Notes under the pieces: model-generated
What the model saw: only the letters and a program-made list of their open reading frames with translations
Told to the model about the DNA's origin: nothing
Database searches by the model: none
Part shown: positions 1 through 40,188 of the stretch, piece by piece
Layout of the letters: each line of letters begins with the position of its first letter
Numbering within the stretch: position 1 is the first letter of the stretch
Assembly (NCBI GenBank): GCA_965644315.1
Contig: CBFFRQ010000032.1
Location: forward strand, 1-64,000
Length of the DNA stretch: 64,000 bases
Direction: 5' to 3'
DNA from: Caecitellus pseudoparvulus
Taxonomy: Eukaryota; Protista; Bigyra: Bicosoecida
Position numbers and translations under genes: made by a program

Positions 1-3000
1 CCACGCCCGTGCCATCCGAGAGGAATCTCCATGGCCACTGAAGAGCTACACGCCACGCTTCAATGCCGCAAGGATGCAATGCGGAAGTGCACGAGGCTTG
101 TGAAGAAGAAGCGACATGTCACTCTGTCCAGGATCCGAGCACGCTTGAGGGAACTCGCTGTCACGGATCCCTTCACTGCCCACCAACACATCAAGCGCCT
201 GTCAGGTCGAGGTCGTCGAGCCTCGTCGAGCTCCCATCAGGTCCGTGAAGTCCATGCAGGGAGTGCTCATCTCCTCCCCTGATCTGGTGAAGGAGGAGGT
301 TGCCAAGCAGATGTCTGGCATCCTGAGTCACAACAAGCCCAGGCCAACATCGCTGAAGTACGGGCTGGCAAGGTTCCTTCCCTCAGCCCAAGAGTCCTTC
401 ACCCCGCCAGTGACATGGCTTCCCTCCAAGAAGCAAGTCAAAGTCCTCATGGGATCACTCAGCTTGCATCGACACCCAGGCTCTGGCAAGTTCCAATCAG
501 AGCACATCAAGTATGCTGGGCCAGGCTTCCAAGACATCTACTCCCAAGCCGTCATCCAAGCGTTGCAACACGGCACCTGCCCGCCAGACTACCATGCAGT
601 GCATTGGGTCACTCATCCCCAAGAAGACGAGTGAAGCTGGGCGGCCTCGCACATACCGCTTGATTGTATGCCGCCCCCCTCCTGCGAAGCTCTTCTTCTC
701 AGTGGCCGCTGCATGCCTGGAGTCCTGGATGCAAACATGGGTGTCGAAGGAGCAGGCTGGCTTCACTCGACACCGCAACACGCATGAGCACATCTTGGCT
801 CTCCAAGAGGTGATCAAGGGCCACCTGCGACAGTCAACAGCGCCAGTGCAAGTCCTGGTACTCTTCGTGGACTTCCGGGGAGCATTCGACTCTGTGAGCC
901 ACGCAGCCATCACAGAGATCCTTGAGGCTGCCTCCCTCCCTGCGCCACTCCTGGCCGTCATCAAGGAGTACATGTCCAAGGCGACGGTCTCCATCAACAC
1001 GCGCCATGGTCTTTGTCGCCCCCTTCCTGTCAGCAATGGTGTCCCCCAAGGAGGAGCTCTGTCCCCCTCCTCTTCAAGGTTGCGATAGATGTGCTGTCGC
1101 AAAGGCTCCACGAGATGCCCCTCCAAGGCATCCAGGGAGTGGGCATCCCAACACCAGCAGGCCATGTCACCCACACCCTGTATGCAGACGACCTGGCCTG
1201 CATCGCAACGTCTGCCACGGCCTTGCACCGAATCTTCGTAGAGGTGAAGGCCATCGCTGCCCGGGTTGGCCTTGCCATCAACCCGTCGAAGTCCGGGGTC
1301 ATGATCCTTGCCAACTCCGTGCGAGGCAGCCGGACACCAGTCAGTGAAAGGAAGAAGTTGGTGTGGCGCTCGGCTGCCCTCAAAGCGGGCAGCATGCTGA
1401 AGGTTGGCACCAAGTCCATCCAACGGGTGGCCGAGTACACCTACTTGGGTGTGCCGATGTCCGAACATCCTGCCAAGACCCGTGCACTTACCCTGCAACA
1501 AGCTGGGCTTGCTTGCATCCAAGCCGGGTTCACTGCGGGCGCGCTGCTCAGTGCCACCTGGCTCGATGTGCAGCAGCGGCACCTGGTTGGGTATGCCACT
1601 GTCACGTCAGCCGCCGACTACATGCTGTCCACCCAAGCCAACAGTTCCCTGCTTCCGCTGCGCGATGTTGACCGCGGCGTCGCCCTCGCCTTGGACAGGA
1701 CCCAAGTCGGCTCGCAGAGTGCACTCATGCGCCCCCACAGCTACGCCAAGCTGGCTCTATGCGGAGTCCTGCCTGCCCACATCCGCTCCACGCAACTGCG
1801 GACTGGGATGTTTGTCAAGGCTCTCCGGATGCTGCACTCGGACACCCCTCTTGCCCGAGCTCTGTGCCTGACCATCCCGCAGGCCCTTGACCTTATGCCT
1901 GCTTCGATGTCGACGACCTTCATCGTCGACACCATTGCTGATGGAGGTCGACTCCGGGCTGCCAGTGTCCCTGCTCCGTGGGCACTGCATGCCCTCTTGG
2001 ACCTCTGGCTCATGGGCTGCATGCCAGACCTTGCACAGCTTCGGCTTGCATGTGCACCTGGCTCTGAGCATGCTGCCACAGCCCTTGCCCAAGTCCTTGC
2101 CGGACTTAAGACCACCCCGGGCCTCCACAGGTCTGCGGTGGTTGGGGTGGCTGCCAGCGAGACGTCGTCCATGGCCGAACCCCCGGCCTTCACGGCAGAC
2201 ACCCCCTGGGCCCTGCGTCGCCAAGTCCTCGCGTCGTATCTTCATGTAGCCCAGGCAGTGCCGAGTGCAGCTGCCCACTACACCACCGACAGCCGAATCC
2301 CCCAAGTGCAGAAGCCCAGGCCGTATCATCTTGGGCCTGGTGCGCAGCACTTCGTGTGGCTACATCCACTGCCACACGGGGTGAACCCTCTTCTGGGTCT
2401 GTCCTGATGACAGGCCCACCAGAGTGATGGTCCATCACTTCCAGACCTTACAGCTTCTTCATGGGGGGGACAGTGCCACTCTGTACGAGTGCTGTCCGAT
2501 TTGCGGACTCAACACCGATGTACAGCTGCACGTGCACATCCTGCTGCACTGCACCCACCACGAACTCACCATGGCACGCCAACACACGATGACCAAGTTC
2601 AGAGAACTGGCCAACAGGTCAGCTGTGCCCGAGTCCGCGGCGGGCCAAGTGCAGTGCCTGCCCATCCCCCCAAGATCTGCCACGCCCTCCTTCGTGCCCC
2701 CGACCCAGAGCCGCGAAGCCTGCGGGACCTCGAGGTCCTCCACAGGCTCCTGCTCTGCGGGCAGTGGCCTCACCGGTGGGGGCTGGCCGACGAAGAGCAG
2801 CTTGTCTCTATGAAAGAGGCGGCTGTCCTCTCCCACCCCCACCTCGTCCACCGTGCTGGTCCTTGCCGTGTCCGTGCCCCAGCTGTATGGCAAGACATCC
2901 TGCGCAGCGCGGTTGAGTTCACAGCAAAGGCGTGGCGGGTCACAGTCACTTACATGTTGCGTATGACCGATGCCCACCACCTTGCTGTCCAGAGGCATGC

Positions 3001-3273
3001 TGAGTACCTGTGGTGGGCAGTACATGGGCGCGGGGCGCCGCTGCCTGGCCGCACGCAGCCAGTGCGGTCAGCGGCCACGCGGCACACGCGCAGGCCCCGC
3101 ACTCGCCGCAGGGCACGCACCTTTTCCCTGCCAAGGCTGGCCAAGTGCCGTCCACGGAGGGCAAAGGTCCAGAGGACGCTGCAGCACTTCATGGGGCCTC
3201 AGCCAGCCCATGCAGACACTGCAGTGGTGAGGGGGAAGGGCCCGATGGTTCCTGTGAAGAGAGCGAGGAGTAA
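1..3273 (+). CDS. RT/CCHC part of family A polyprotein, with several 1-3 nt indels (probably sequencing errors)
   Basis: ORF fragments carry FVDFRGAFDSV, GVPQGGALSP, LYADD and YTYLG. Stop TAA at 3271-3273 matches the copy 2 stop at 10890-10892. Confidence 0.85.
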
Positions 3274-4101
3274 GGCGGAACGCAGGCGTGCGGGCGGGGA
3301 GTGGAACAGCCACGCTTGTGGCCGCGTCTACCCTCCACGAGTGTCCTGACGTGATGAACCTGTGTGAAGCGTGGTGATAACCACGGTAGCCCGAAGCAGA
3401 TGCCCAAGACCTTACCTTTTACTTGCTACATAGCCTGCGAGTAGCAGTGGAGTGAGCGGGAGCGTGCCTCGGGCCGCGGCGCTGTGCAGCCGCAGTGCTG
3501 CACGGCCGCGGCCCGGACGGCTGCTGACGACGAAGCAAGCTCACTCACCACGAAACCAGGGCGTGACGGGTTGAAGAAGAAGGTCCTTTTCCTTTCTGTA
3601 TCCCCCTTGATGCGCGCGATGCGCTCTGTGGCGCGGGCGCGTGTGTGCGCACGGGTGCTGGTGTGCGCGATCGAATTCCGCACCACGCACCCGGCCGAGT
3701 TCCCGCGCAGAGGCGGAGCACACACCTCATGAAGGGCGCAGAGAGGCCTATGCGAGGGCCACAGAGGAGGTGGGTGAGGAATTTGGATTATGATCTGTTG
3801 TCAAGACTGCGCGGATGCCTGGGTGTGCTCTGGTGTGCCCCAGGTGTCTGGCGCTGGCGGAGCAAGGGATGAAGTGTAGCGGAGGAGGGCCAAGATGATG
3901 AATTGGAGCGGGCAGGGACCTGCCCTAGCAAGTGGCGGCAGATATAACGGGTGCAAGCCTGTGTTTGTTGCGAATCCGCGCCAAGCGGTAGCCGCTGTGG
4001 CGTCCTACATGTGCAGAGGTGCATTGTGGGGCGCCCGTGTGACGCTCAAGCTGTACGGTGCCAAGCTGTGCCGAGGTGAAATGCATTGTGAGTTGCTAAC
4101 C
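1..4101 (+). mobile_element. Non-LTR retrotransposon family A, copy 1 (3' part, cut by window start)
   Basis: Near-identical to 7620-11719 (offset ~7620). Contains RT motifs and the 3' UTR, ending ...AATGCATTGTGAGTTGCTAACC. Confidence 0.95.
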
Positions 4102-4106
4102 CTAAC
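4096..4106 (+). repeat. Telomeric C-strand repeat junction CTAACCCTAAC
   Basis: Read directly between the 3' end of copy 1 and the 5' end of copy 2. Confidence 0.9.
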
Positions 4107-7100
4107 TTTCCAAATGTCAACCTAATCATAGGTTGTGCATTGCTAACAATGCCTAATCCAGGCGCTCGTGCACCCAAGTGTGGTGTTGCACAGCGCTAGT
4201 GCATTGCATTGGGTGCGCGGGTGAGCAGCAGTGCGATTTCCGCACGCCACGCTCCCCACGCAGTGCTAAGTGCGGCTCCGGCTGGACGCTGCACCACTGC
4301 TTGCCCGAAACCATTGCTTCATCATCATGTCATCCAAGGCCAGCCAAGTCCTCGGCGTGCTCTTCGCGGACAAGTGCCTGGAGCAGCGTGTGTCAGGGCG
4401 GCCACGAACAGGCGTGCTGACTGACATGTCACGCCGAGGGGCAGCCCGGACTTTCCAGCTCGGTGGCATGGACATTGACTGCACGGATGGCCAAGATGCA
4501 TCATTTTTCGTCCGCAAGTGGCTTGGCATCTTCGGAGATGAGCTGGAGGCCGAGTTTCCTGGAGCTGCTCCTGTGATGGTGCGCGCTAATTCCGCGCTGA
4601 AACAATCCGCACCAGGGCAGACCATTCTCCTTGTCACGCTGCCGAGTGACGGTGAAGGCCCCGCCATTGCCAAGTCCCTGCGCGTTGCTGCTGCTGTGCG
4701 AGAAGACTTCATCATCATGTTGAAGGGGGGCGGCTCTGTGGGCGTGGTGTACTCCAACACGCGGCAGTTCACGTCAGAGCGCGCCAGGGTCAGCGTGATC
4801 GCCCCTCCCTCTGTAGTGAAGGTTGCTCAAAAGATCTCTGAGGCAGCAACCAACATTGCCTGTGAGAGTGGGGATGTGTCCAAGATCTTGAAGCTTGTCC
4901 ATGCCCATGTCACCAACACTCACTCCATCGCCAAGCGTGCTCCAAAGCCTGTCGGACACTCCGTCTCTCCAGAAGATGACGCCTCTGTCGACAAGCTGCC
5001 AAGCACACTGCCAAAGCCCCTTGCTGAAGGCGGTCCCAAGAAGAAGAAGACACGGAGGGGCAAACGCAAGCCATCGACAAAGAGCTCTCCTCCTCGGCGC
5101 TTTGCTGAACTGTTCAAGGAGGGCGTCGTGACTACTCGCCCCACAGCGCCCTCCCCTCCATCTGCACCCGCCGAGTCGTCAGGCCAAGCTGCTCCTTCCC
5201 CTGAACATGTCCCTCTTCCGTCCACCAGAGTCAAGCGCCCGACCTTCAGCAGATGGGACTCGCCCAGCCCACGCAAGAGACCTCCTCCCGTGTCCCCGAC
5301 AGCTGCGGCACTATCGGGCAGCGGGGCACAGCCACCTCTTGCAAGTCCTGCAAACACGGCACCCACTACGCTGCTAAAACTTGCTGACTGCAGTCGCCGA
5401 CCAGCACGGCTTGGACAGGCAAACCTTGACTTGGGTTCCCCCTTGCAGCAACTCCTCGCCTCTGCGCACGCGTTCCGCAATAAGGACCAACGACACTGTG
5501 TCCAGGCCTGCTTTGAAACAGCAGCAGGAGAGCCACTCTTCAATGACGATGACCTTGTCCTTCTTCAACACGCAGCCACCATCCAAGCGGCGCAGACATC
5601 CTTCTGTGCTGTGTTGAAGAAGAGCAGCGCGCGTCACCCTGGCACACCAGACTCGGAGGTCCATGCTGTCTGTGAAACAGAACCTTCCATGCCGACCACC
5701 GAGCAAGACAAGCTTGACCTCTTTCAATCGTTCCTGTACCGACATGCGCCTGATGATGCAGCACTCACCAGTGCCTGTCCACCTGTGCTCCTCCCTGGTC
5801 TTCATCTCTTGCTCACGCGTATCAACGAGGGCCATCGGGAACTTGAAGGCGGCACAGTGTCTGGACACTGCCTGGTTGATGTCAAGGCAGAGAAAGAGAT
5901 GACCTCCGAGGCAAAAGTCTTTGCTGGGGTGTACTTCGCGTTTGCTCTCAGCTTGGTTGACACTGGAGGTGTCTCCCACCTTCAGCTCATTGTCGTCAAC
6001 GCTGAGAAGTCCACACTTGTACTGTGGAACCCTGACGAACCCTTCAAGAGCACCAACATTCCAATCGACGGCTGCCTGAACACACTCGACTCGATGGGCA
6101 TTGAGTCTGTGTACCGTGTCTCATCCTCCCCGCTGAGTGGCAAGCCGATTCCCTTCAAAGACAGAGTGCGGCTGGCCATGCTGTCCCTCAGGTCTGACTT
6201 TCCCCCACTCCCGTTCGTAGCTGAGGACGAGACTGTCTACCCAAAGACTCTCATCACTGGCAAGACAACACGGGTGTACCTCCCTGTAGGCCGCACCACG
6301 CGCCAACAAGCAGCTGCCGATGAGAGAGCCAAGACGGTTGACCCCATACTGTCACTCATCCCAACATCTGTACAAGTCGCCGACCAGATCAGTAGCGATG
6401 CACCCCATACCCCTGTCGGCCGCGGAAGACACATGACACTCGCACTTGCTGCTTGGAATGTGCACGGCTCCTGCGGCCAGTGTGTCCACGATGTCGTCAC
6501 CTGTGTCCAGTCTGTGTGCAGTGCGTCGTCCATGTTGGCACTCTGTGTCACAGAGCCTGGGGGGCACGGCCTGCTCGACACGGAAGTCATGGGCCTTGAA
6601 TGCTTCCGCCCAAGCCCGCCTGATCGGCCTGTCGGGCGGAGTGAGGTTGCCTTGCTGCTTGATCGAAGACTCAATGGCTCAGTGATCCCGGGCCTCGACG
6701 TTGATGGTCGCTGCATAATTGCTTGCTCGATCCCTGCAAGCCCACAACCCATCGCCATCATAGCCACGTACGTACCCAACTGGCACTCTTGGCAGCGAAA
6801 GAAGCCAGTCGCTGATCCGGACACGAAGCTTCCGTACCGGCAAGAGGTTTGGCGGCAGCTTGAGTCTGCTGTTCAACAGCTCCGCCTCACCCACATGATT
6901 GTCATCATGGGTGACTTGAACACTCATCCAGGTGACGAAGGGGTAGGCACGTGGGGAGCAGATCACTGGGAGAACCGGACCGGCATTCCCGAGCCCACTG
7001 AAGACATCCTGCAGATGCAGCTCCTCTGCGAGCAAGGCCCACTGATCCCAGCCGGACTTGGTGGCCTGCCAACGCACAGGTATGGTCGGGCTCTGGACCA

Positions 7101-10100
7101 CATCCTGATGACTGAGGACCTCCACAGTATGTTGAGCAGACCACTGCACATCACAACAACGTTCTCCAGCGGGACGAAAAAGAGTGCCGCTCGACTAGTC
7201 CTCAGTGACCATCATCTTGTTGCAGCAGAAGTCCGAGTGAAGCCTGCCAAGCGAGTGTGGACATCATCCAAGAGCCCCCATGTACAGGCGGTGCCACCCT
7301 GGTGGACCTCAGCGACAGAGGCTGGGCTGGCAGCGCAAGCGATGTTTCGAGGATCCCTCAGCTCGCGGGCCACCGCGCTCCAGACAGGCAGCGCCGCCCC
7401 GAGCCTATCCTTTCTCAACGGTGCTATCGAAGCTGCGGCTATGGACACACATCGCAAGGCCAAGACCCCACGTGACCCTCTGCCCCAGCTGAAGATGGAC
7501 ATCAAGGCGGCCAGCGGGCTCAAGAAGTCCATGACTGCACGCGTGTCCAAGCTGCGGAAGACCATTGCCAAGCTGCACCGGAAGCTCGCACTTGCCACCG
7601 GTCGGCATCCTCAGCCAGACCACGCCCGTGCCATCCGAGAGGGAATCTCCATGGCCACTGAAGAGCTACACGCCACGCTTCAATGCCGCAAGGATGCAAT
7701 GCGGAAGTGCACGAGGCTTGTGAAGAAGAAGCGACATGTCACTCTGTCCAGGATCCGAGCACGCTTGAGGGAACTCGCTGTCACGGATCCCTTCACTGCC
7801 CACCAACACATCAAGCGCCTGTCAGGTCGAGGTCGTCGAGCCCGTCGAGCTCCCATCAGGTCCGTGAAGTCCATGCAGGGAGTGCTCATCTCCTCCCCTG
7901 ATCTGGTGAAGGAGGAGGTTGCCAAGCAGATGTCTGGCATCCTGAGTCACAACAAGCCCAGGCCAACATCGCTGAAGTACGGGCTGGCAAGGTTCCTTCC
8001 CTCAGCCCAAGAGTCCTTCACCCCGCCAGTGACATGGCTTCCCTCCAAGAAGCAAGTCAAAGTCCTCATGGGATCACTCAGCTTGCATCGACACCCAGGC
8101 TCTGGCAAGTTCCAATCAGAGCACATCAAGTATGCTGGGCCAGGCTTCCAAGACATCTACTCCCAAGCCGTCATCCAAGCGTTGCAACACGGCACCTGCC
8201 CGCCAGACTACCATGCAGGCATTGGGTCACTCATCCCCAAGAAGACGAGTGAAGCTGGGCGGCCTCGCACATACCGCTTGATTGTATGCCGCCCCCTCCT
8301 GCGAAGCTCTTCTTCTCAGTGGCCGCTGCATGCCTGGAGTCCTGGATGCAAACATGGGTGTCGAAGGAGCAGGCTGGCTTCACTCGACACCGCAACACGC
8401 ATGAGCACATCTTGGCTCTCCAAGAGGTGATCAAGGGCCACCTGCGACAGTCAACAGCGCCAGTGCAAGTCCTGGTACTCTTCGTGGACTTCCGGGGAGC
8501 ATTCGACTCTGTGAGCCACGCAGCCATCACAGAGATCCTTGAGGCTGCCTCCCTCCCTGCGCCACTCCTGGCCGTCATCAAGGAGTACATGTCCAAGGCG
8601 ACGGTCTCCATCAACACGCGCCATGGTCTTTGTCGCCCCCTTCCTGTCAGCAATGGTGTCCCCCAAGGAGGAGCTCTGTCCCCCCTCCTCTTCAAGGTTG
8701 CGATAGATGTGCTGTCGCAAAGGCTCCACGAGATGCCCCTCCAAGGCATCCAGGGAGTGGGCATCCCAACACCAGCAGGCCATGTCACCCACACCCTGTA
8801 TGCAGACGACCTGGCCTGCATCGCAACGTCTGCCACGGCCTTGCACCGAATCTTCGTAGAGGTGAAGGCCATCGCTGCCCGGGTTGGCCTTGCCATCAAC
8901 CCGTCGAAGTCCGGGGTCATGATCCTTGCCAACTCCGTGCGAGGCAGCCGGACACCAGTCAGTGAAAGGAAGAAGTTGGTGTGGCGCTCGGCTGCCCTCA
9001 AAGCGGGCAGCATGCTGAAGGTTGGCACCAAGTCCATCCAACGGGTGGCCGAGTACACCTACTTGGGTGTGCCGATGTCCGAACATCCTGCCAAGACCCG
9101 TGCACTTACCCTGCAACAAGCTGGGCTTGCTTGCATCCAAGCCGGGTTCACTGCGGGCGCGCTGCTCAGTGCCACCTGGCTCGATGTGCAGCAGCGGCAC
9201 CTGGTTGGGTATGCCACTGTCACGTCAGCCGCCGACTACATGCTGTCCACCCAAGCCAACAGTTCCCTGCTTCCGCTGCGCGATGTTGACCGCGGCGTCG
9301 CCCTCGCCTTGGACAGGACCCAAGTCGGCTCGCAGAGTGCACTCATGCGCCCCCACAGCTACGCCAAGCTGGCTCTATGCGGAGTCCTGCCTGCCCACAT
9401 CCGCTCCACGCAACTGCGGACTGGGATGTTTGTCAAGGCTCTCCGGATGCTGCACTCGGACACCCCTCTTGCCCGAGCTCTGTGCCTGACCATCCCGCAG
9501 GCCCTTGACCTTATGCCTGCTTCGATGTCGACGACCTTCATCGTCGACACCATTGCTGATGGAGGTCGACTCCGGGCTGCCAGTGTCCCTGCTCCGTGGG
9601 CACTGCATGCCCTCTTGGACCTCTGGCTCATGGGCTGCATGCCAGACCTTGCACAGCTTCGGCTTGCATGTGCACCTGGCTCTGAGCATGCTGCCACAGC
9701 CCTTGCCCAAGTCCTTGCCGGACTTAAGACCACCCCGGGCCTCCACAGGTCTGCGGTGGTTGGGGTGGCTGCCAGCGAGACGTCGTCCATGGCCGAACCC
9801 CCGGCCTTCACGGCAGACACCCCCTGGGCCCTGCGTCGCCAAGTCCTCGCGTCGTATCTTCATGTAGCCCAGGCAGTGCCGAGTGCAGCTGCCCACTACA
9901 CCACCGACAGCCGAATCCCCCAAGTGCAGAAGCCCAGGCCGTATCATCTTGGGCCTGGTGCGCAGCACTTCGTGTGGCTACATCCACTGCCACACGGGGT
10001 GAACCCCCTCTTCTGGGTCTGTCCTGATGACAGGCCCACCAGAGTGATGGTCCATCACTTCCAGACCTTACAGCTTCTTCATGGGGGGGACAGTGCCACT

Positions 10101-14656: not shown

Positions 14657-14662
14657 CTAACC
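14651..14662 (+). repeat. Telomeric repeat junction CTAACCCTAACC
   Basis: Read directly at the 3' end of element B. Confidence 0.9.
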
Positions 14663-14772
14663 TGTAGCGCTCCTGGTGTGCCTTGTGCACAGCAGCGAAC
14701 GCTACATGTGATGCCCAAGCTGTATCGCGTGCAAGCGTGAAGGCGACATGCAATGCATTGAATGAACTAACC
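14663..14772 (+). mobile_element. ~105-nt 3'-terminal remnant of another subfamily (D)
   Basis: Contains GATGCCCAAGCTGTA-stem-AGGC...AATGCATTG...CTAACC, like the other termini. Confidence 0.8.
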
Positions 14773-14800
14773 CCTAACCCTAACCCCCTAACCCCTAACC
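14767..14800 (+). repeat. Short telomeric tract, irregular C3-5TAA repeats
   Basis: CTAACCCCTAACCCTAACCCCCTAACCCCTAACC. Confidence 0.92.
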
Positions 14801-15267
14801 GGCAAGGAGTGTGTGCGCACGGGTGCTGGTGTGCGCGATCGAATTCCGCACCACGCACCCGGCCGAAAGACCACGCAGAGACGCAGCAGGAACCTCATGG
14901 AAGGCACAGAGAGGCCTATGAGGCCCACAGAGGAGGTGGGTGAGGAATTTGGATTATGATCTGTTGTCAAGACTGCGCGGATGCCTGGGTGTGCTCTGGT
15001 GTGCCCCAGGTGTGTGGCGCTGGCGGAGCAAGGGATGAAGTGAAGCGGAGGAGGGTCAAGATGATGAATTGGAGCGGGCAGGGACCTGCCCTAGCAAGCG
15101 GCGGCATGTATAACGGGCGCAGGCCTGTGTTTGTTGCGTATCCGCGCCAAGCGGTAGCCGCTGTGGCGTCCTACATGTGCAGAGGTGCATTGTGGGGCGC
15201 CCGTGTGACGCTCAAGCTGTACAGTGCCAAGCGGTGCTGAGGTGAAATGCATTGTGAATTGCTAACC
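14801..15267 (+). mobile_element. Family A-type 3' UTR remnant (E) preceded by GGCAAGGA
   Basis: 14809-15267 aligns with 3641-4101 with scattered substitutions and ends CTAACC. Confidence 0.9.
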
Positions 15268-15274
15268 CTAACCC
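15262..15274 (+). repeat. Telomeric repeat junction CTAACCCTAACCC
   Basis: Read directly. The final CCC overlaps the first bases of the truncated downstream element. Confidence 0.9.
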
Positions 15275-18200
15275 ACGCAAGAGACCTCCTCCCGTGTCCC
15301 CGACGGCTGCAGCACTCTCGGGCAGTGGGGCACAGCCGCCATCTGCAAGTCCTGCATGCAAGGCACCCACTACGCTGCTGAAGCTTGCTGACTGTAGTCG
15401 CCGACCAGCACGGCTTGGACAGGCCAACCTTGACTTGGGTTCCCCCTTGCAGCAGCTTCTCGCATCTGCGCACGCATTCCGCAATGAGGACCAACGCCAC
15501 TGCGTCCAGGCCTGCTTCGAAACAGCAGCCGGAGAGACCCTCTTCAATGACGACGACTTCGTCCTTCTCCAACACGCAGCTACCATCCAAGCTGCCCAGT
15601 CATCCTTCTGTGCTGTGCTGCGGAAGAGCAGCACCCGCCACCCTGGTACACCAGACTCGGAGGTCCATGCTGTCTGTGAAACAGAACCCTCCATGCCGAC
15701 CACCGAGCAAGACAAGCTTGACCTCTTCCAGTCCTTCCTGCACCGACATGCGCCTGATGATGCAGCACTCACAGGTACCTGTCCACCTGTGCTCCTACCT
15801 GGCCTTCATCTCTTACTCACGCGTATCAACGAGGATCATCGCGAACTTGATGGTGGCACAGTGTCTGGGCACTGCCTTGTTGATGTCAAGGCAGAGAAGG
15901 GCGTCACCTCCGGAGCGGCTGTCTTCGACGGAGTGTACTTCGCGTTCGGGCTCAGCTTGGCTGATGCTGCAGGTGTGTCACACTTGCAGCTCATTGTCGT
16001 CAACGCTGAGAAGTCCACACTGGTACTGTGGAACCCTGACGAACCCTTCAAGAGTACCAACATCCCACTCGATGACTGCTTGACCACACTCGCATCGATG
16101 GGCATTGAGTCAGTGTACCGCGTCTCATCCTCCCCACTGAGCGGAAAGCCAATCCCCTTCAAAGACAGAGTGCGGCTCGCCATGCTGTCTCTCAGGTCTG
16201 ACTTTCCCCCACTCCCATTCGTAGCTGAGGACGAGACTGTCTACTCAAAGACTCTCATCACTGGAAAGACAACGCGGGTGTACCTCCCTGTAGGCCGCAC
16301 CACGCGCCAGCAAGCCGCCGCTGATGAGAGAGCTAAGACGGTTGACCCATTACTGTCACTCATCCCAACATCTGTACAAGCCGCCGACCAGATCAGCAGC
16401 GATGCACCCCATACCCCTGTCGGCCGCGGAAGACACATGACCCTTGCACTCGCTGCTTGGAATGTGCACGGCTCTTGTGGCCGGTGTGTCCACGACGTCA
16501 TCACCTGTGTCCAATCTGTGTGCAGTACGTCGTCCATGCTGGCACTGTGTATCACAGAGCCTGGGGGACACGGCCTACTCGACACGGAAGTCATGGGCCT
16601 TGACTGCTTCCGCCCAAGTCCGCCTGATCGGCCTGTCGGGCGGAGTGAGGTTGCCTTGCTGCTGGATCGAAGACTCAATGGCTCAGTGATTCCGGGCCTT
16701 GACGTTGATGGTCGTTGCATAGTTGCATGCTCGATCCCTGCAAGCCCACAGCCCATCGCCATCATAGCCACGTACATACCCAACTGGCACTCTTGGCAGC
16801 GAAAGAAGCCAGTCGCTGATCCGGACACGAAGCTTCCGTACCGGCAAGAGGTTTGGCGGCAGCTGGAGTCTGCTGTTCAACAGCTCCGCCTCACCCACAT
16901 GATCGTCATCATGGGTGACCTGAACTCTCATCCAGGTGACGAAGGGATTGGAACATGGGGAGCAGATCATTGGCAGAACAGGACCGGCATCCCTGAACCC
17001 ACTGAAGACATTCTGCAGATGCAGCTCCTCTGCGAGCAAGGCCCACTGATCCCAGCTGGACTCGGTGGTCTGCCAACGCACAGGTATGGTCGGGCCCTGG
17101 ACCATATCCTGATGACTCAGGACCTCCACAGTATGTTGAGCAGACCACTGCACATCACGACGACTTTCTCCAGTGGGACGAAGAAGAGTGCTGCTCGACT
17201 AATCCTCAGTGATCACCATCTTGTTGCAGCAGAAGTCCGAGTGAAGCCAGCCAAACGGGTATGGACATCATCCAAGAGCCCCCATGTACAGGCAGTTCCA
17301 CCCTGGTGGACCTCAGCGACAGAGGTTGGGCTGGCAGCGCAAGCGATGTTTCGAGGATCCCTCAGCTCGCGAGCCACTGCACTCCAAACAAGCAGCGCGG
17401 TCCCTAGCCTGTCCTCCCTCAATGGTGCAATCGAGGCTGCGGCCCTCGACACACATCGCAATGCCAAAACCCCACGTGACCCTCTGCCCCAGCTGAAGAT
17501 GGACATCAAGGCGGCCAGCGGGCTCAAAAAGGCCATGACCGCACGCGTGTCTAAGCTGCGGAAGACCATTGCCAGGTTGCGCCGCAAGCTCGCTCTCGCT
17601 ACCGGTCGGCATCCTCAACCAGACCATGCCCATGCCATCCGAGAGAGAATCTCCATGGCCTCTGAAGAGGTACACGCCACGCTTCAATGCCGCAAGGATG
17701 CAATGCGGAAGTGCACGAGGCTTGTGAAGAAGAAGCGACATGTCACTCTGTCCAGGATCCGAGCACGCTTGAGGGAACTCGCTGTCACGGATCCCTACAC
17801 CGCTCACCAACACATCAAGCGTCTGTCAGGTCGAGGTCGCCGAGCCCGCCGAGCTCCCATCATGTCCGTGAAGTCCATGCAGGGAGTGCTCATCTCCTCC
17901 CCTGATCTGGTGAAGGAGGAGGTTGCCCAGCAGATGTCTGGCATCCTGAGTCACAACAAGCCCAGGCCAACATCGCTGAAGTACGGGCTGGCACGGTTCC
18001 TTCCCTCAGCCCAAGAGTCCTTCACCCCGCCAGCGACATGGCTCCCCTCCAAGAAGCAAGTCAAAGTTCTCATGGGTTCACTCAGCTTGCATCGACACCC
18101 AGGCTCTGGCAAGTTCCAGTCGGAGCACATCAAGTACTCAGGGCCTGGCTTCCAAGACACCTATGCCCAAGCCGTCATCCAAGCGCTTCAGCAGGGAACC

Positions 18201-21200
18201 TGCCCGCCAGACTACCATGCAGGCATTGGGTCACTCATCCCCAAGAAGACGAGTGAAGCTGGGCGGCCTCGCACATACCGCTTGATTGTGTGCCGCCCTC
18301 CTCCTGCCAAGCTCTTCTTCTCAGTTGCTGCGGCATGCCTGGAGTCGTGGATGCAATCATGGGTGTCGAAGGAGCAGGCTGGCTTCACTCGACACCGCAA
18401 CACGCATGAGCATATCTTGGCTCTCCAAGAAGTGATCAAGGGCCACTTGCGACAGTCAACAGCGCCAGTGCAAGTCCTGGTACTCTTCGTTGACTTCCGA
18501 GGAGCATTTGACTCTGTGAGCCACGCAGCCATCACAGAGATTCTTGAGGCCGCCTCCCTCCCTGCTCCACTCCTGGCCGTCATCAAGGAGTACATGTCCA
18601 AGGCGACGGTCTCCATCAACACGCGCCATGGTCTTTGTCGCCCCCTTCCTGTCAGCAATGGCGTCCCCCAAGGAGGAGCTCTATCTCCCCTCCTCTTCAA
18701 GGTTGCGATAGATGTGCTGTCGCAAAGGCTCCACGAGATGCCCCTCCAAGGCATCCAGGGGGTTGGCATCCCAACACCAGCAGGCCATGTCACCCACACC
18801 CTGTATGCCGATGACCTGGCCTGCATCGCAACGTCGGCCACGTCCCTGCACCGAGTCTTCATGGAGGTGAAGGCTATCGCTGCCCGGGTTGGTCTCTCAA
18901 TCAACCCGTCGAAGTCGGGCGTCATGATCCTTGCCAACTCCGTGCGAGGCAGCCGGACCCCAGTCAGTGAAAGAAAGAAGATGGTGTGGCGCTCGGCTGC
19001 CCTCAAAGCGGGCAGCATGCTGAAGGTCGGCGACAAGTCCATCCAACGAGTGGCAGAGTACACCTACTTGGGCGTACCGATGTCCGAACATCCAGCCAAG
19101 ACCCGTACCCTTACCCTTCAACAAGCGGGGCTGGCCTGCATCCAAGCCGGGTTCACTGCGGGCGCGCTGCTCAGTGCCACTTGGCTCGATGTGCAGCAGC
19201 GGCACCTAGTTGGGTGTGCTACTGTCACCTCAGCCGCTGACTACATGCTGTCCACCCAAGCCAACAGCTCCCTACTTCCGCTGCGCGACGTTGACCGCGG
19301 CGTTGCTCTCGCCTTGGACAGGACGCAGGTGGGCTCGCAGAGTGCCCTCATGCGCCCGCATAGCTACGCCAAGCTGGCGCTGTGTGGAGTCTTGCCTGCC
19401 CACATCCGCTCCACACAACTGCGGATCGGGATGTTTGTCAAGGCTCTCCGAATGCTGCACTCGAACACCCCCCTTGTCCGAGCACTGTGCTTGACCATCC
19501 CGCAGGCGCTTGACATCATGCCCGCTTCAATGACGACTGCCTTCATCGTGGACACCATTGCCGATGGGGGTCGGCTCCGGGCTGCCAGTGTCCCTGCTCC
19601 GTGGGCACTGCATGCCCTCTTGGACCTCTGGCTCCTGGGCTGCATGCCAGACCTTGCACAGCTTCGGCTTGCATGTGCACCTGGCTCTGAACATGCTGCC
19701 TCTGCCCTTGCCAAAGTCCTTGCCGGACTGAAGACCACCCCTGGTCTGCACAGGTCTGCGGTGGTAGGGGTGGCTGCCAACGAGTCGTCGTCCATGGCCG
19801 AACCCCCTGCCTTCCCGGCTGACACACCTTGGGCCCTGCGTCGTCAAGTCCTCGCGTCGTACCTGCACGTAGCCCAGGCAGTGCCGAGTGCAGCTGCCCA
19901 CTACACTGTCGACAGCCGCATCCCCCAAGTGCAGAAGCCCAGGCCCTATCATCTTGGGCCTGGTGCGCAGCACTTCGTGTGGCTCCATCCACTGCCACAC
20001 GGGGTGAACCCCCTCTTCTGGGTCTGCTCCGATGACAGACCCACCAGGGTGAAGGTGCACCACTTCCAGACTCTTCAACTTCTCCACGGAGGGGACAGTG
20101 CCACCCAGTACGAGTGCTGTCCGATCTGCGGACTCAGCAATGACGAAGAGCTCCATGCGCACATCCTGCTGCACTGCACCCACCACGAACTCACCGCGGC
20201 ACGCCAACACACGATGGCCAAGTTCAAGGAACTGGCCAACCGGTCAGCTGTGCCCGAGCCCGCGGCGGGCCAAGTGCAGTGCCTGCCCATCCCCCCCAAG
20301 ATCTGCGAAGCCCTTGTCCATGCCCCCGACCCAGAGCCGCGAAGCCTGCGGGACCTCGAGGTCCTCCACAGGCTCCTGCTCTGCGGGCAGTGGCCCCACC
20401 GGTGGGGGCTGCCCGATGATGCGCAGCTTGTGTCCATGAAAGAGGCGGCTGTCCTGTCCCACCCCCACCTTGTCCACCGTGCTGGTCCTTGCCGTGTCCG
20501 TGCCCCAGCTGTATGGCAAGACATCCTGCGAGGTGCGGTCGAGTTCACAGCAAAGGCGTGGCGGGTGACAATCACTTACATGCTGCGGATGACTGATCCT
20601 CAACACCTTGCTGTCCAGAGACATGCTGAGTACCTGTGGTGGGCGGTGCATGGGCGCGGGGCTCCTCTACCTGGCCGCACGCAGCCAGTGCGGTCAGCGG
20701 CCACGCGGCACACGCGCAAGCCTCGCACTCGCCGCAGGGCACGCACCTTTTTCCCTGCCAAGGCTGGCCAAGTGCCGTCCACGGAGGGCAAGGTGCAGAG
20801 GACGCTGCAGCACTTCATGGGGCCTCAGCCAGCCCTTGCAGACACTGATGGTGAGGGGGAGGGTCTCGGTAGTTCCTGTGAAGAGCGGGAGGAGTAAGGC
20901 GGAACGCAGGCGCGCGGGCGGGGCGTGGAACAGCCACGCTTGTGGCCGCGCCTACCCTCCACGAGTGCCCTGACGTGATGAACCTGTGTGAAGCGTGGTG
21001 ATAACCACGGTAGTGCGAAGCAGACGACCAAGACCTTACCTTTTATTCCCTGTATAACCTGCGAGTAACGGTGGAGTGAGCGGGAGCGTGTCTCGGGCCG
21101 CGGCGTGTGTGCAGCCGCAGCGCTGCACGGCCACGGCCCGGATGCTGCCTGGCGACGATGCAGGCTCACTCACCATGAAAGCATGGCGTGACAGGTTGAA

Positions 21201-21724
21201 GAAAAGAGTCCTCGTCCTTGCTGAACGTCCTTGATGCGCGCGGTGCGCTCTGTGGCGCGGGCGCGTGTGTGCGCACGGGTGCTGATGTGCGAGATCAAAT
21301 TCCGCACCACGCACCTGGCCGAAAGTCTGTGCAGAGGCACAGGATCCACCTCATGGAGGGCTCAGGGAGGCTCCTGAGAGCCACAGAAGAGGTGGAATGT
21401 GCTTTTTGAATTATGGACACTTGTGAAGACTGCACGGATGCGTGGGTGTGCTCTGGTGTGCCGCAGGTGTCTGGCGCGAGAGGAGCAAGGGGTGAAGTGA
21501 AGCGGAGGAGGGACAAGATGGTGAATTGGAGCGGGCAGGGACCTGCCCTAGCAAGCGGCGACACATATAACGGGTGCAAGCCTGTGTTTGTTGCGTATCC
21601 GCGCCAAGCGGTAGCCGCTGTGGCGTCCTACATGTGCAGAGGTGCATTGTGGGGCGCCCGTGTGACGCTCAAGCTGTACAGTGTCAAGCGACGCTGAGGT
21701 GAAATGCATTGTGAATTGCTAACC
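15272..21724 (+). mobile_element. Family A subfamily 2, 5'-truncated copy (~6.45 kb)
   Basis: Begins at the position equivalent to ~5268 of copy 2. Many synonymous-looking substitutions versus copies 1 and 2. Ends TTGTGAATTGCTAACC (CTAACC at 21719-21724). Confidence 0.95.
15294..20897 (+). CDS. 5'-truncated but uninterrupted polyprotein ORF (protease-like, APE, RT, CCHC)
   Basis: 1867-aa open frame with all APE and RT motifs. Shows that APE and RT share one ORF with the upstream domains. Confidence 0.9.
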   Translation: MSPTAAALSGSGAQPPSASPACKAPTTLLKLADCSRRPARLGQANLDLGSPLQQLLASAHAFRNEDQRHCVQACFETAAGETLFNDDDFVLLQHAATIQAAQSSFCAVLRKSSTRHPGTPDSEVHAVCETEPSMPTTEQDKLDLFQSFLHRHAPDDAALTGTCPPVLLPGLHLLLTRINEDHRELDGGTVSGHCLVDVKAEKGVTSGAAVFDGVYFAFGLSLADAAGVSHLQLIVVNAEKSTLVLWNPDEPFKSTNIPLDDCLTTLASMGIESVYRVSSSPLSGKPIPFKDRVRLAMLSLRSDFPPLPFVAEDETVYSKTLITGKTTRVYLPVGRTTRQQAAADERAKTVDPLLSLIPTSVQAADQISSDAPHTPVGRGRHMTLALAAWNVHGSCGRCVHDVITCVQSVCSTSSMLALCITEPGGHGLLDTEVMGLDCFRPSPPDRPVGRSEVALLLDRRLNGSVIPGLDVDGRCIVACSIPASPQPIAIIATYIPNWHSWQRKKPVADPDTKLPYRQEVWRQLESAVQQLRLTHMIVIMGDLNSHPGDEGIGTWGADHWQNRTGIPEPTEDILQMQLLCEQGPLIPAGLGGLPTHRYGRALDHILMTQDLHSMLSRPLHITTTFSSGTKKSAARLILSDHHLVAAEVRVKPAKRVWTSSKSPHVQAVPPWWTSATEVGLAAQAMFRGSLSSRATALQTSSAVPSLSSLNGAIEAAALDTHRNAKTPRDPLPQLKMDIKAASGLKKAMTARVSKLRKTIARLRRKLALATGRHPQPDHAHAIRERISMASEEVHATLQCRKDAMRKCTRLVKKKRHVTLSRIRARLRELAVTDPYTAHQHIKRLSGRGRRARRAPIMSVKSMQGVLISSPDLVKEEVAQQMSGILSHNKPRPTSLKYGLARFLPSAQESFTPPATWLPSKKQVKVLMGSLSLHRHPGSGKFQSEHIKYSGPGFQDTYAQAVIQALQQGTCPPDYHAGIGSLIPKKTSEAGRPRTYRLIVCRPPPAKLFFSVAAACLESWMQSWVSKEQAGFTRHRNTHEHILALQEVIKGHLRQSTAPVQVLVLFVDFRGAFDSVSHAAITEILEAASLPAPLLAVIKEYMSKATVSINTRHGLCRPLPVSNGVPQGGALSPLLFKVAIDVLSQRLHEMPLQGIQGVGIPTPAGHVTHTLYADDLACIATSATSLHRVFMEVKAIAARVGLSINPSKSGVMILANSVRGSRTPVSERKKMVWRSAALKAGSMLKVGDKSIQRVAEYTYLGVPMSEHPAKTRTLTLQQAGLACIQAGFTAGALLSATWLDVQQRHLVGCATVTSAADYMLSTQANSSLLPLRDVDRGVALALDRTQVGSQSALMRPHSYAKLALCGVLPAHIRSTQLRIGMFVKALRMLHSNTPLVRALCLTIPQALDIMPASMTTAFIVDTIADGGRLRAASVPAPWALHALLDLWLLGCMPDLAQLRLACAPGSEHAASALAKVLAGLKTTPGLHRSAVVGVAANESSSMAEPPAFPADTPWALRRQVLASYLHVAQAVPSAAAHYTVDSRIPQVQKPRPYHLGPGAQHFVWLHPLPHGVNPLFWVCSDDRPTRVKVHHFQTLQLLHGGDSATQYECCPICGLSNDEELHAHILLHCTHHELTAARQHTMAKFKELANRSAVPEPAAGQVQCLPIPPKICEALVHAPDPEPRSLRDLEVLHRLLLCGQWPHRWGLPDDAQLVSMKEAAVLSHPHLVHRAGPCRVRAPAVWQDILRGAVEFTAKAWRVTITYMLRMTDPQHLAVQRHAEYLWWAVHGRGAPLPGRTQPVRSAATRHTRKPRTRRRARTFFPAKAGQVPSTEGKVQRTLQHFMGPQPALADTDGEGEGLGSSCEEREE

Positions 21725-21986
21725 TCTGGCTCAGCCGACTGAGCCGAGAGGGCGCGGGAGGGACAGTTCAGCACGTATGGGCGGGCGCGGGCGCGCCCTA
21801 GCAAGCGGCGGCTTATACAACGGACGTATGTCCGTGATGGCTGCAGACCCACGAGAGTGGGAGCCGCTGTGGTGCCTACTACAGTGCATTCGTGTGCTGT
21901 GGTACGCAAGGCACCACGAGTGATGCCCAAGCTGTACCGTGCAAGAGTGTGCGGAGGCAAGTTGCAATGCATTGAGTGAGCTAACC
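21725..21986 (+). mobile_element. ~260-nt 3'-terminal remnant of a further subfamily (C), innermost unit of the array
   Basis: Shares GCCCTAGCAAGCGGCGGC..TATACAACGG and GATGCCCAAGCTGTAC...AATGCATTGAGTGAGCTAACC with the other termini. Confidence 0.85.
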
Positions 21987-40100: not shown

Positions 40101-40188
40101 TTGGTTGTCTTTGGTTGGGCTGCAAATCAGCGGAACAGGAACAGCATGCGGTACCAGAGTCCTGTACTGCTTGACTGAACCCCAGCAC
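34193..40188 (-). CDS. Sel1-like repeat protein built from tandem ~201-aa cassettes with Ala-Pro linkers
   Basis: Motifs AQ..LG.MY..G.GV..D...A..WY..AA.QG. 1709-aa ORF plus terminal ORF 34193-34708, separated by a garbled segment at ~34710-35110. Start codon uncertain. Confidence 0.85.
34214..39395. repeat. Tandem array of 603/609-bp units with a 1815-bp higher-order period
   Basis: Equivalent positions at 35564, 36173, 36776, 37379, 37988, 38591 and 39194 (spacings 609, 603, 603, 609, 603, 603), plus 34527. Confidence 0.92.
39396..39677. repeat. Hexamer coding repeat (GCTGGW)n encoding a poly(Ala-Pro) linker
   Basis: Read directly. Confidence 0.9.

Follow-up and report, generated by a model that had tools for sequence, protein, structure and literature searches.

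Introduction

Retrotransposons dedicated to telomeres are known from insects, Giardia, Chlorella, rotifers, one lizard, and two fungi. In Drosophila, HeT-A, TART, and TAHRE lie head to tail with oligo(A) 3′ ends toward the centromere and variable 5′ truncation, and an abundant RT-less partner with only an N-terminal protein (in the Gag-like position) accompanies RT-bearing relatives with an APE endonuclease. The Bombyx elements TRAS1 and SART1 (R1 clade) are APE-type LINEs that reside within telomerase-made repeats, with a 3′ UTR structure that is likely needed for RT recognition. The Magnaporthe elements MoTeR1 and MoTeR2 and the Fusarium element FoTeR form head-to-tail arrays with very short TTAGGG spacers and no poly(A) in telomerase-positive hosts, pair an RT-bearing element with a shorter RT-less partner that has common termini, and carry a restriction-like endonuclease (CRE/SLACS-like). 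Chlorella Zepp, a LINE-like element that gathers at the chromosome end of a telomerase-positive microbe, has poly(A) and nests into itself. SART1 needs a run of at least three telomeric repeats for insertion, and its poly(A) tail must be long (PMC7265360). A 2023 catalogue (PMC10088271) contains no telomere-dedicated retrotransposons from stramenopiles or other SAR protists, and a literature search found none from these groups.

Here, we describe a stack of LINE units at the start of a protist contig that is almost certainly a real telomere-specific LINE array. It shares with HeT-A, TART, and TAHRE the head-to-tail order, the direction of the 3′ ends, the variable 5′ truncation, and the abundant RT-less partner that encodes only an N-terminal protein. 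As with HeT-A, an element is joined directly to a terminally deleted gene, the signature of healing, and we infer the mechanism here from this anatomy. Unlike the Drosophila elements, however, those described here coexist with telomerase and kilobase-long TTAGGG tracts, end in one telomere repeat (CTAACC) instead of oligo(A), and have one long open reading frame (ORF), not gag plus pol. The likeness described here is one of anatomy, as is the likeness to TRAS1 and SART1, which comprises an APE-type LINE within telomerase-made repeats, the probable role of the 3′ UTR structure in RT recognition, and, for TRAS, the same relation of sense strand to C-strand. The elements differ from TRAS1 and SART1 in having no poly(A), a single ORF, and evidence for attachment to non-telomeric broken ends. 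They resemble MoTeR and FoTeR in their telomerase-positive host, their arrays with very short spacers and no poly(A), and their RT-less partner with common termini, although here an APE lies N-terminal to the RT, whereas the fungal endonuclease is restriction-like by published description. Like Zepp, they are LINE-like elements gathered at a chromosome end of a microbe that has telomerase, but they lack poly(A), their units all retain the 3′ end, and no host copies are split.

Features otherwise divided between systems are combined in this family, namely an APE-LINE body (TRAS/SART, TART), a 3′ end that is a telomere repeat and lacks poly(A) (MoTeR, Athena), an abundant protein-only partner (HeT-A, MoTeR2), and a healing junction on a truncated gene (HeT-A). 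Since the host of this combination is telomerase-positive, how retrotransposons come to serve chromosome ends, or to exploit them, can be tested directly in a microbe with a small genome.

Seven LINE units in one orientation at the contig start

The window is the whole stretch of DNA analyzed, 64,000 nucleotides corresponding to positions 1 to 64000 of contig C32, with position 1 at the contig start. Self-BLAST of the window resolved its first ~22 kb (positions 1 to 21986) into a one-way, head-to-tail stack of seven LINE units (Table 1). Each of the seven termini is formed by a conserved ...TGCA(A/T)TG...CTAACC motif, which occurs seven times on the + strand of the window and not at all on the − strand. 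An earlier interpretation of this DNA from its letters alone (the sequence-only reading) had placed seven CTAACC ends in a single orientation, and we recovered all of them on the + strand. Its count of eight units has to be lowered to seven, as the DNA from 21987 onward is a truncated host gene. Two of the other features it described, the missing poly(A) and the variable 5′ truncation, hold both in the window and beyond it. Every unit 3′ end in the window and at other contig ends reads CTAACC without an A-run, the RNA 3′ end would read CUAACC, one telomere repeat, and 3′ ends are kept while 5′ truncation varies among the seven window units and at ~28 junctions in other contigs. The proposed spacing of one to five repeats needs revision: the spacers contain 0 to ~4.5 telomere repeats, with zero at 21725 and 21987.

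Table 1. Features of the array and its base in the window
Feature	Positions	Strand	Terminal CTAACC	Description
U1	1..4101	+	4096-4101	Family A; 5′ part lost at contig start; ends GCTAACC
Spacer CTAA	4102..4105	+		Less than one telomere repeat
U2	4106..11719	+	11714-11719	Full-length family A, 7,614 nt; ends GCTAACC
Filler GGCAAGGA	11720..11727	+		Non-telomeric 8 nt between U2 3′ end and full-length U3 5′ end; no repeat
U3	11728..14656	+	14651-14656	Full-length family B, 2,929 nt, without RT; ends GCTAACC
Spacer CTAACC	14657..14662	+		One repeat
U4	14663..14772	+	14767-14772	110-nt 3′ terminal fragment of a further family; ends ACTAACC
Irregular telomere tract	14773..14800	+		28 nt; CCCTAA, CCCCTAA, and CCCCCTAA mixed
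Filler GGCAAGGA, second copy	14801..14808	+		At 5′ junction of truncated U5
U5	14809..15267	+	15262-15267	A-like 3′ terminal 459 nt; 94% identity to U2
Spacer CTAA(C)	15268..15272	+		Boundary with U6 ambiguous by 1-3 C
U6	15272..21724	+	21719-21724	A′ element; first ~1.16 kb missing
U7	21725..21986	+	21981-21986	262-nt 3′ end, C-like family; adjoins U6 without repeat
Truncated subtelomeric gene-family member	21987..24000	−		Array base; broken mid-sequence at 21987

U1 and U2 are 99.3% identical, the self-BLAST match of U1 spanning positions 7620 to 11819. In U2, a 5′ UTR (4106 to 4326) is followed by a single long ORF from an ATG at 4327 to 10892, which encodes, in order, an N-terminal domain, a basic patch, an APE endonuclease, an RT, and a C-terminal Cys/His motif, and the 3′ UTR carries a structured domain ending in GCTAACC. 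The 5′ end of full-length A elements, CTTTCCAAATG, stands directly after (CCCTAA)n in C5 and C111. The U2 frame is broken at a run of five C near 8290 to 8294, while U1 (about 672 to 677), C151, and C194 have six C and are in frame. Since the run varies between five and six among otherwise identical copies, we rejected the idea that the frameshift is programmed or shared by the whole family; a read error may account for it. The U3 ORF runs from an ATG at 11952 to 13673 and is followed by a 3′ domain of the same type as that of A, while a ~100-nt unit resembling U4 also occurs in C5. U6, which is 91.7% identical to U2, contains an unbroken 1867-aa ORF (15294 to 20897), its APE lying at ~aa 390 to 650 (Pfam, aa 450 to 641) and its RT at aa 982 to 1261. 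U7 matches the ends of RT-bearing elements on contigs C105 and C34 at 85% identity. At the array base, U7 meets the gene with 2 to 3 nt of microhomology (CC) and no telomere repeat, and paralogs of this gene in C137 and C79 run at least 1.4 kb further telomere-ward. Nested, Zepp-like insertion was considered and rejected, since every unit keeps its 3′ end and self-BLAST found no orphan 5′ halves to the left. A single copy of the 12-mer CCCTAACCCTAA lies in the window, where the expected number is zero.

Element copies are found at contig ends in a genome that encodes TERT

Mapping across the genome contigs located ~30 copies of the family-A RT region, at least 40 copies of B, and at least 46 RT-bearing matches. 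All copies lie within ~20 kb of a contig start (+ strand) or, for contigs of known length, of a contig end (− strand), and the element 3′ end points inward at every copy found. Genome-wide mapping found no element copies inside large contigs, and the 3′-end motif was never found on the opposite strand at the contig ends examined. Contig C32 opens inside U1 and carries no terminal repeat cap. Sister arrays do have (CCCTAA)n caps, of 261 nt in C5 and of 5.2 kb of perfect repeat in C8, and also in C12, C13, and C111, and the genome contains 16,441 CCCTAA 24-mers. The same architecture, in the order repeats-B-repeats-A, is present in an environmental contig from an independent assembly. The confinement to contig ends and the capped sister arrays agree with the sequence-only reading of a telomere-dedicated array with its 3′ ends inward; the mapping of genomic copies that it had called for turned up contig ends only. 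The search for TERT that it had also proposed gave a match to the TERT RBD (79 bits) within a 1389-aa open frame. Since TERT is present, the elements are not a telomerase replacement, and with distal perfect CCCTAA tracts of up to 5.2 kb, the idea of a HeT-A/TART-like substitute for telomerase has to be abandoned.

We catalogued ~28 junctions from about 15 contig ends, ~12 of which have zero or one telomere repeat. Zero-repeat junctions include a B|B join in C12 (GCTAAC|TTTCC) and the end of a B copy in C151 (GCTAA|AGGACG), with others in C5, C8, and C42, and the catalogue also contains micro-units of 15, 18, and 9 nt. Array bases have no telomere repeat in three of the ~6 examined, those of C8 and C42 besides that of the window. 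Elements also occur between long repeat tracts, with 418 nt of proximal repeats in C5 and 874 nt in C79, and likewise in C194.

A LINE group with an RT-less partner and a common 3′ RNA domain

The units belong to an APE- and RT-bearing LINE group that consists of family A, its sister lineage A′, a C-like family, and an RT-less coding partner, B. The autonomous members (A, A′, and C-like) have one long protein with an N-terminal domain, an APE, a LINE RT, and a Cys/His motif near the C terminus. The element RT is of the LINE type: it matches RVT_1 (Pfam, 1.7e-29), and the nearest solved structures are those of the R2Bm RT (6e-17) and human L1 ORF2p (2.5e-12). The APE, N-terminal to the RT, matches Exo_endo_phos at 25 bits against a Pfam cut-off of 24.5; its D-N motif aligns to ExoIII, and all catalytic motifs are present in the translation (WNVHG, ITEPG, ATYIPN, MGDLNSHP, LDHIL, and SDHH). 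No nuclease domain other than the APE was detected in the element protein. The APE region has a dN/dS of 0.09 to 0.13, a constraint equal to that on the RT, which argues that nicking matters. The sequence-only reading had taken the diverged inner copies to be the oldest. Between U2 and U6, dS is 0.26, dN is 0.03, and dN/dS is 0.12, and together with the intact 1867-aa frame this indicates divergence between active lineages, not decay in place.

The element protein has no close relative, with only 24 to 34% identity to anything in the protein libraries and only 8 proteins below 1e-30 among 1.8 billion representatives; a word-based protein search with the APE-RT region returned only 3 weak relatives. 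The N-terminal domain had no Pfam match, an AlphaFold2 pLDDT of 34 (from a 3-row alignment), and Atlas scores of at most 0.88, that is, below 0.9. The contig that encodes the protein P0005 (coral metagenome) has no telomere repeat on it, and the contig of P0007 spans only 930 nt.

B is the most abundant member of the group, with copies that are ~100% identical genome-wide. Over the first ~390 aa it has 39% identity to the A N terminus, and over the first ~145 nt it has 82% identity to the A 5′ end. All that B retains is the 5′ UTR, the N-terminal protein, and the 3′ end, and its RT must be borrowed. Compared with the environmental copy, B has a dN/dS of 0.33 over the first 430 codons. Common to all families is a ~190-nt covarying 3′ RNA domain that ends in ...GCUAACC, the complement of one telomere repeat. 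Its 45 pairs are 97.9% paired, versus 26 to 56% in slid controls, with changes on both sides at 14 pairs, and none of 500 shuffles attained the observed values.

Free chromosome ends as the probable primers

On the reading that we hold as more likely than not, positions 1 to 21986 are the inner portion of an array that a telomere-dedicated LINE group assembled at a chromosome end through end priming. At least the innermost and zero-repeat junctions were likely primed from a free end, not from a nick in duplex repeats. Free-end priming is favored because U7 joins the truncated gene directly, because zero-repeat junctions and micro-units of 9 to 18 nt occur, and because telomerase-RNA-like filler stands at two 5′ junctions. 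The CUAACC tail of the element RNA would pair with the 3′ end of the G-strand (...GGTTAG-3′), and 1 to 2 nt of pairing may be enough on a non-telomeric ...GG-3′ end. The RT would then copy the RNA onto the end, often stopping early, which would generate the 5′ truncations and the micro-units. The new cDNA 3′ end could be extended again, either by another element RNA (a template jump or re-priming, giving zero-repeat junctions) or by telomerase. Telomerase acting on a non-telomeric end would sometimes start 8 nt 3′ of its template, placing GGCAAGGA before the first repeat, and would otherwise keep up ordinary TTAGGG tracts on the telomere-ward side of the stack. Template jumps during a single event may account for some of the stacking.

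The orientation and 3′ register of the units fit end priming and nick priming alike. An alternative is that all units arose as in TRAS and SART, with the APE nicking the G-strand in duplex TTAGGG, CUAACC annealing there, and target-primed reverse transcription following, while stacks and short spacers result from later repeat loss or template jumps and free ends play no part. We judge this account unlikely, but it is the most serious competitor. The sequence-only reading had proposed end priming; the junctions favor it, but an intact APE with all of its catalytic motifs and under purifying selection leaves nick priming some probability. Fixed orientation is what annealing to one strand would give, telomerase ensures that duplex repeats are always available, and the elements lying between long repeat tracts in C5, C79, and C194 fit nicking equally well. 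What nicking accommodates poorly are the array bases where no repeat precedes unique or gene DNA, one of them in the window at a gene that is truncated relative to its paralogs, and the junctions with at most one repeat, in contrast to the three or more repeats and poly(A) needed by SART1 (PMC7265360). The junction at 11714 to 11727, a single repeat plus filler, would demand a nick exactly in a lone repeat.

Exchange between chromosome ends is, on sequence grounds, the source of part of the stacking, because a 9.7-kb A-GGCAAGGA-B block recurs in C151 at 99.94% identity with a different proximal flank. That recombination or break-induced replication between element-bearing subtelomeres, and not retrotransposition on the spot, put together most of the array at the C32 end is a much broader claim, and one we find quite improbable. 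The recurring block, the ample homology offered by near-identical B copies, and the repeated A-then-B order in C194, C42, and C5 all speak for it. The A-to-B junctions, however, differ from end to end: the window has filler, C194 has 23 nt of repeats, C42 has ~20 nt, and C5 has a 15-nt micro-unit, which indicates independent joins. Recombination can redistribute 5′ truncations, micro-units, and the truncated-gene junction, but it cannot generate them. An assembly artefact, in which repeats collapse or break contigs and the assembler produces both the end location and the stacking, is very hard to credit. C32 does start inside an element, many element-bearing contigs are short (10 to 60 kb), and the homopolymer differences between copies resemble long-read errors. 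Breaks at internal repeats would nevertheless give both orientations, and only the inward one is seen; several contig termini are capped by CCCTAA, and the environmental assembly arrived independently at the same order of repeats and elements.

Filler sequences and a candidate telomerase RNA

In a candidate telomerase RNA locus (C13:457601-457861, − strand), CCCTAACC is followed by 8 nt that match the filler GGCAAGGA exactly. The candidate template in this locus, CCCUAACC (8 nt), is complementary to more than one telomere repeat, and the filler matches the sequence just 3′ of it. Apart from the two junctions in the window and the counterpart of one of them in C151, TAACCGGCAAGGA occurs only at an internal locus, C13:457817-457829. 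At the second filler, CCCTAACC, GGCAAGGA, and GTG together form a 19-nt exact match to the candidate RNA; the GTG is also present in A and therefore represents microhomology. Chance alone would give, by calculation, ~0.014 internal sites at which CCCTAACC precedes this 8-mer, and the independent filler events in this genome number only two. We rejected the filler as a part of the elements, since the three sequences that follow it are unrelated and the internal locus has no further similarity to the elements.

The C13 locus has a T6 run ~205 nt downstream of the template and a plausible H-type pseudoknot, without covariation, formed by GGGUGG/CCACCC and CUGGGAUUUC/GAAAUCCCAG with the loop CUUUUCUC; as a control, an inverted repeat of at least 10 bp arose in 43 of 2,000 shuffles. 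The fold energy of the locus is non-significant (MFE z, −1.1), and an Rfam search of it gave no match. No telomere showed read-through past the 5′ template boundary (GCTGAGTCCCTAAC), a shorter filler (CCCTAACC then GG) was found at 4 junctions, which is not above chance, and a metagenome scan with the 16-mer returned 120 matches, all attributable to chance and none in a telomeric context.

The filler was probably copied from the candidate telomerase RNA, and a LINE RT that switched template to telomerase RNA would leave an identical scar. [quoted passage not shown] They differ in that the end extended here is a retrotransposon cDNA 3′ end at a chromosome terminus and that the telomerase RNA here is a candidate. 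More tentatively, with the chances falling a little short of even, the joints may be a fossil record of LINE RT and telomerase alternating on one free end. Telomerase would occasionally start 8 nt too early, leaving a scar that would identify the telomerase RNA gene of this protist lineage (candidate, C13:457601-457861), and the elements would serve to heal ends in a cell that still has telomerase, a condition between that of ordinary telomeres and that of Drosophila. Such filler could provide an inexpensive way of finding the telomerase RNA in a lineage with none described, as well as a sequence-level read-out of telomerase on non-telomeric ends. In another organism, an unrelated contig starts with (CCCTAA)3CC-GGCAAGGAG and continues into non-telomeric DNA.

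Array anatomy

The assembly comprises 30.6 Mb in 215 contigs. The window covers contig CBFFRQ010000032.1 (C32) from its first base to 64 kb, so position 1 is a contig end. We found all seven CTAACC termini where the sequence-only reading had placed them, on the plus strand only, and each carries the motif TGCA(A/T)TG(N3-10)CTAACC. The head-to-tail arrangement and the absence of poly(A) across the array units were likewise borne out, although self-comparison gave seven units, not the eight proposed, and some joints hold zero telomeric repeats instead of the claimed one to five. A nested, Zepp-like insertion would have left the missing 5' parts of truncated units further left; we looked for these in the window and did not find them. 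This model is excluded, because self-comparison of the array revealed neither a unit lacking its 3' end nor an orphan 5' half.

Units of the C32 array by self-comparison, capped sister contigs and the candidate telomerase RNA gene
Feature	Location	Strand	Description	Spacer to next feature
U1	1-4101	+	family A, cut by contig start	CTAA
U2	4106-11719	+	full-length A, 7.6 kb	8-nt non-telomeric filler
U3	11728-14656	+	full-length B, 2.9 kb	CTAACC
U4	14663-14772	+		irregular repeats, 28 nt, plus the same 8-nt filler
U5	14809-15267	+	A-like 3' end	CTAA(C)
U6	15272-21724	+	A', without first 1.16 kb	none
U7	21725-21986	+	C-like 3' end	none (array base)
Contig C5			order: (CCCTAA)n, full A, 15-nt micro-unit, truncated B, 418 nt of repeats	
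Contig C8			order: 5.2 kb CCCTAA, full B, 18-nt micro-unit, truncated A'	
Contigs C12, C13, C111			CCCTAA-capped	
Candidate telomerase RNA gene	C13:457601-457861	-	sole internal genome site matching the junction filler	

The inner, diverged copies had been read as the oldest. However, U6 differs from U2 by 8% (dS 0.26, dN 0.03, ω 0.12) with its frame intact. It is thus a member of another active lineage, and the identity gradient does not date the units. An order in which distal units are younger follows from the model, not from the sequence data.

Genomic distribution of the elements

The telomere repeat is CCCTAA/TTAGGG, with 16,441 24-mers in the genome, mostly at contig termini, and the TERT search that had been suggested recovered a gene in contig C77 (25738-26142; 79-bit Telomerase_RBD match in an open frame of 1389 aa). 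The reverse transcriptase (RT) region of A is present in about 30 copies genome-wide and B in at least 40 near-identical copies, while a protein search returned at least 46 RT-bearing copies; these belong to several families, and many have an open frame 2000-3394 aa long. Dispersal at internal loci would have spoken against a telomeric system; mapped genome-wide, the copies lie near contig ends only. No plus-strand copy is more than about 20 kb from a contig start, and the same distance from a contig end holds for all minus-strand copies on contigs whose length was obtained; there are no internal copies in the 984-kb, 725-kb, 364-kb and 239-kb contigs. The elements are oriented inward only, a pattern that contig breaks at repeats would not give. 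As to whether position 1 lies near a (CCCTAA)n end, C32 itself has no distal cap, but sister contigs do. In one environmental metagenome contig, repeats are followed by a 9-nt micro-unit and a full B, which 11 nt of repeats separate from a full A-like 5' end.

Coding capacity and a shared 3' RNA domain

The open frame of U6 (1867 aa) contains an APE endonuclease and an RVT_1 reverse transcriptase, and the nearest solved proteins are R2Bm RT and human L1 ORF2p. Its translation has all of the canonical APE motifs (WNVHG, ITEPG, ATYIPN, MGDLNSHP, LDHIL, SDHH), and a Cys/His motif lies close to the C-terminus of the RT-bearing protein. Full-length A has a 5' UTR of 221 nt and one ORF from 4327. 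In U2 the reading frame is broken at a run of five C (8290-8294); with six C at the same run, U1 (about 672-677), C151 and C194 keep the frame. Either a real polymorphism or a homopolymer error of the long reads accounts for this one-C difference among otherwise identical A copies (window, C5, C111, C42, C151, C194).

The ORF of B, the abundant coding partner, spans 11952-13673 and has no RT. Its first ~390 aa are 39% identical to the A N-terminus and are followed by the same PKKKKTRRGKR patch, and over its first 145 nt B shares 82% identity with the A 5' end. From a dN/dS of 0.33 over the first 430 codons (against one environmental copy, 97% identical), we judge the B protein to be probably in use.

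When aligned, the last ~200 nt of the A, A', B and C-like units and of U4 fit one multi-helix structure. Over its 45 pairs, 97.9% are paired, versus 26-56% with the partners slid, both sides have changed at 14 pairs, and the observed values were reached by none of 500 shuffles. This common structure, together with the CUAACC tail, is likely the basis for mobilising B in trans.

Probable attachment to free ends

Fixed orientation and 3' register are predicted by both end-priming and nicking, and it is the array base, the repeat-less junctions and the junction filler that favour a free 3' end. At the base, U7 adjoins position 21987 inside a member of a subtelomeric gene family, with 2-3 nt of microhomology. 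Paralogs of this gene in contigs C137 (95% identical) and C79 (89%) run at least 1.4 kb further outward, which indicates that the C32 chromosome was cut back to a point within the gene and that an element was joined directly to it. The array bases in C8 and C42 likewise lack a repeat, and about 12 of the ~28 catalogued junctions have 0-1 repeat (for example, GCTAAC/TTTCC between two B units and GCTAA/AGGACG at another B). Micro-units of 9, 15 and 18 nt are also present. SART1 requires at least three repeats and a long poly(A) tail (PMC7265360).

Nick-primed insertion into repeats is a less likely account of these elements. We keep it as a substantial rival, and as a route that likely co-exists beside end addition, because the APE region is constrained equally to the RT (dN/dS 0.09-0.13) and some elements are flanked by long repeat tracts (418 and 874 nt). 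Template jumping in one event could lie behind part of the stacking. Another part is redistribution between chromosome ends: the A-filler-B block also occurs in C151, at 99.94% identity and with a different proximal neighbour.

Junction filler and a candidate telomerase RNA

The filler, GGCAAGGA, lies at the 5' junctions of both the full-length U3 (11720-11727) and the truncated U5 (14801-14808). In the genome, the 13-mer TAACCGGCAAGGA is found only at those two junctions, in the first junction's C151 counterpart and at one internal minus-strand site of the 984-kb contig C13 (...GAGUCCCUAACCGGCAAGGAGUGGAGC...). The U5 junction matches the C13 locus over 19 nt, including the flanking CCCTAACC and a GTG common with A, and the locus has no further similarity to the elements. 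For internal CCCTAACC sites that the filler 8-mer follows, the expectation is about 0.014 (61 million positions / 4^16). As a candidate telomerase RNA, the locus offers a template (CCCUAACC, 8 nt, then GGCAAGGAGUGG), a possible H-type pseudoknot (GGGUGG/CCACCC and CUGGGAUUUC/GAAAUCCCAG stems, U-rich loop) and, ~205 nt downstream of the candidate template, a T6 run; it has no Rfam match, and its fold energy is not significant.

A contig of another organism, from a different sequencing run (Logan SRR24000141, 1-40), begins (CCCTAA)3CC-GGCAAGGAG and continues into non-telomeric DNA. At the DNA level nothing in the C. pseudoparvulus genome matches it, and the LINE on it shares only 33% identity with the C. 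pseudoparvulus families. The same filler thus occurs at a junction of telomere healing in a second organism, which gives independent support. The non-telomeric DNA after the filler holds a DDE-transposase-like ORF, and a 3724-aa APE-RT ORF reads inward, 7.5 kb from the repeats.

The orientation of the filler suits outward synthesis from a cDNA 3' end (element antisense, TCCTTGCC, GGTTAG), and the filler is probably the trace of telomerase beginning early on bare cDNA ends; a template switch of the LINE RT to telomerase RNA, which would also place it there, is less likely. At 11714-11727, a single repeat lies between the filler and the next element's 3' end, which implies that telomerase and the LINE RT alternated on one same end.

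Comparison with known systems

The C. pseudoparvulus family is functionally closest to HeT-A/TART in its polarity, healing and protein-only partner, and closest to MoTeR1/2 in its telomerase-positive host, short spacers, lack of poly(A) and partner without RT, while with TRAS/SART it has an APE-LINE body in common. However, it fails defining features of each: across the three, it departs in that telomerase is present, poly(A) is absent and there is a single ORF, and, unlike MoTeR1/2, its endonuclease is APE and not the restriction-like type. Among 1.8 billion representatives searched exhaustively, only 8 proteins fell below 1e-30. Neither stramenopiles nor other SAR lineages figure in a 2023 catalogue of telomeric retrotransposons (PMC10088271), and we found no such element from these groups in the literature.

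Subtelomeric surroundings

The gene family at the array base occupies 21987-24000 of the window and recurs at about 15 further contig ends (C137, C79, C147, C19 and C107 among them). Its copies are 80-95% identical to one another, read towards the telomere, lack a Pfam match and are truncated at differing points by arrays or repeats. Between 24080 and 57299, most of the longest ORFs (including 1108, 949, 1709, 821 and 1329 aa) are on the minus strand, towards the chromosome end, and GC skew is steadily negative throughout the window. A tandem unit of 603-609 bp (34218-39471; ~8.6 copies, 94-99% identical) encodes the 1709-aa protein, with ~30 Sel1 repeats (ORF 35059-40188, minus strand), and is followed by a (TGGAGC)n array at 39394-39677. 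Inside another ORF lies a 114-bp tandem repeat (33059-33775; 6.3 copies, 76% matches), and an array 75-78% similar to it sits at a comparable distance from the contig end in C8 (13055-15713), so the subtelomeric layout is common to different ends. In contig C34 (C34rc 9912-10000), some 1.6 kb in from the end, B and five repeats are followed by a very AT-rich stretch, CCTAAACCTATTTTTTTATAAATG..., in surrounding DNA of ~60% GC.
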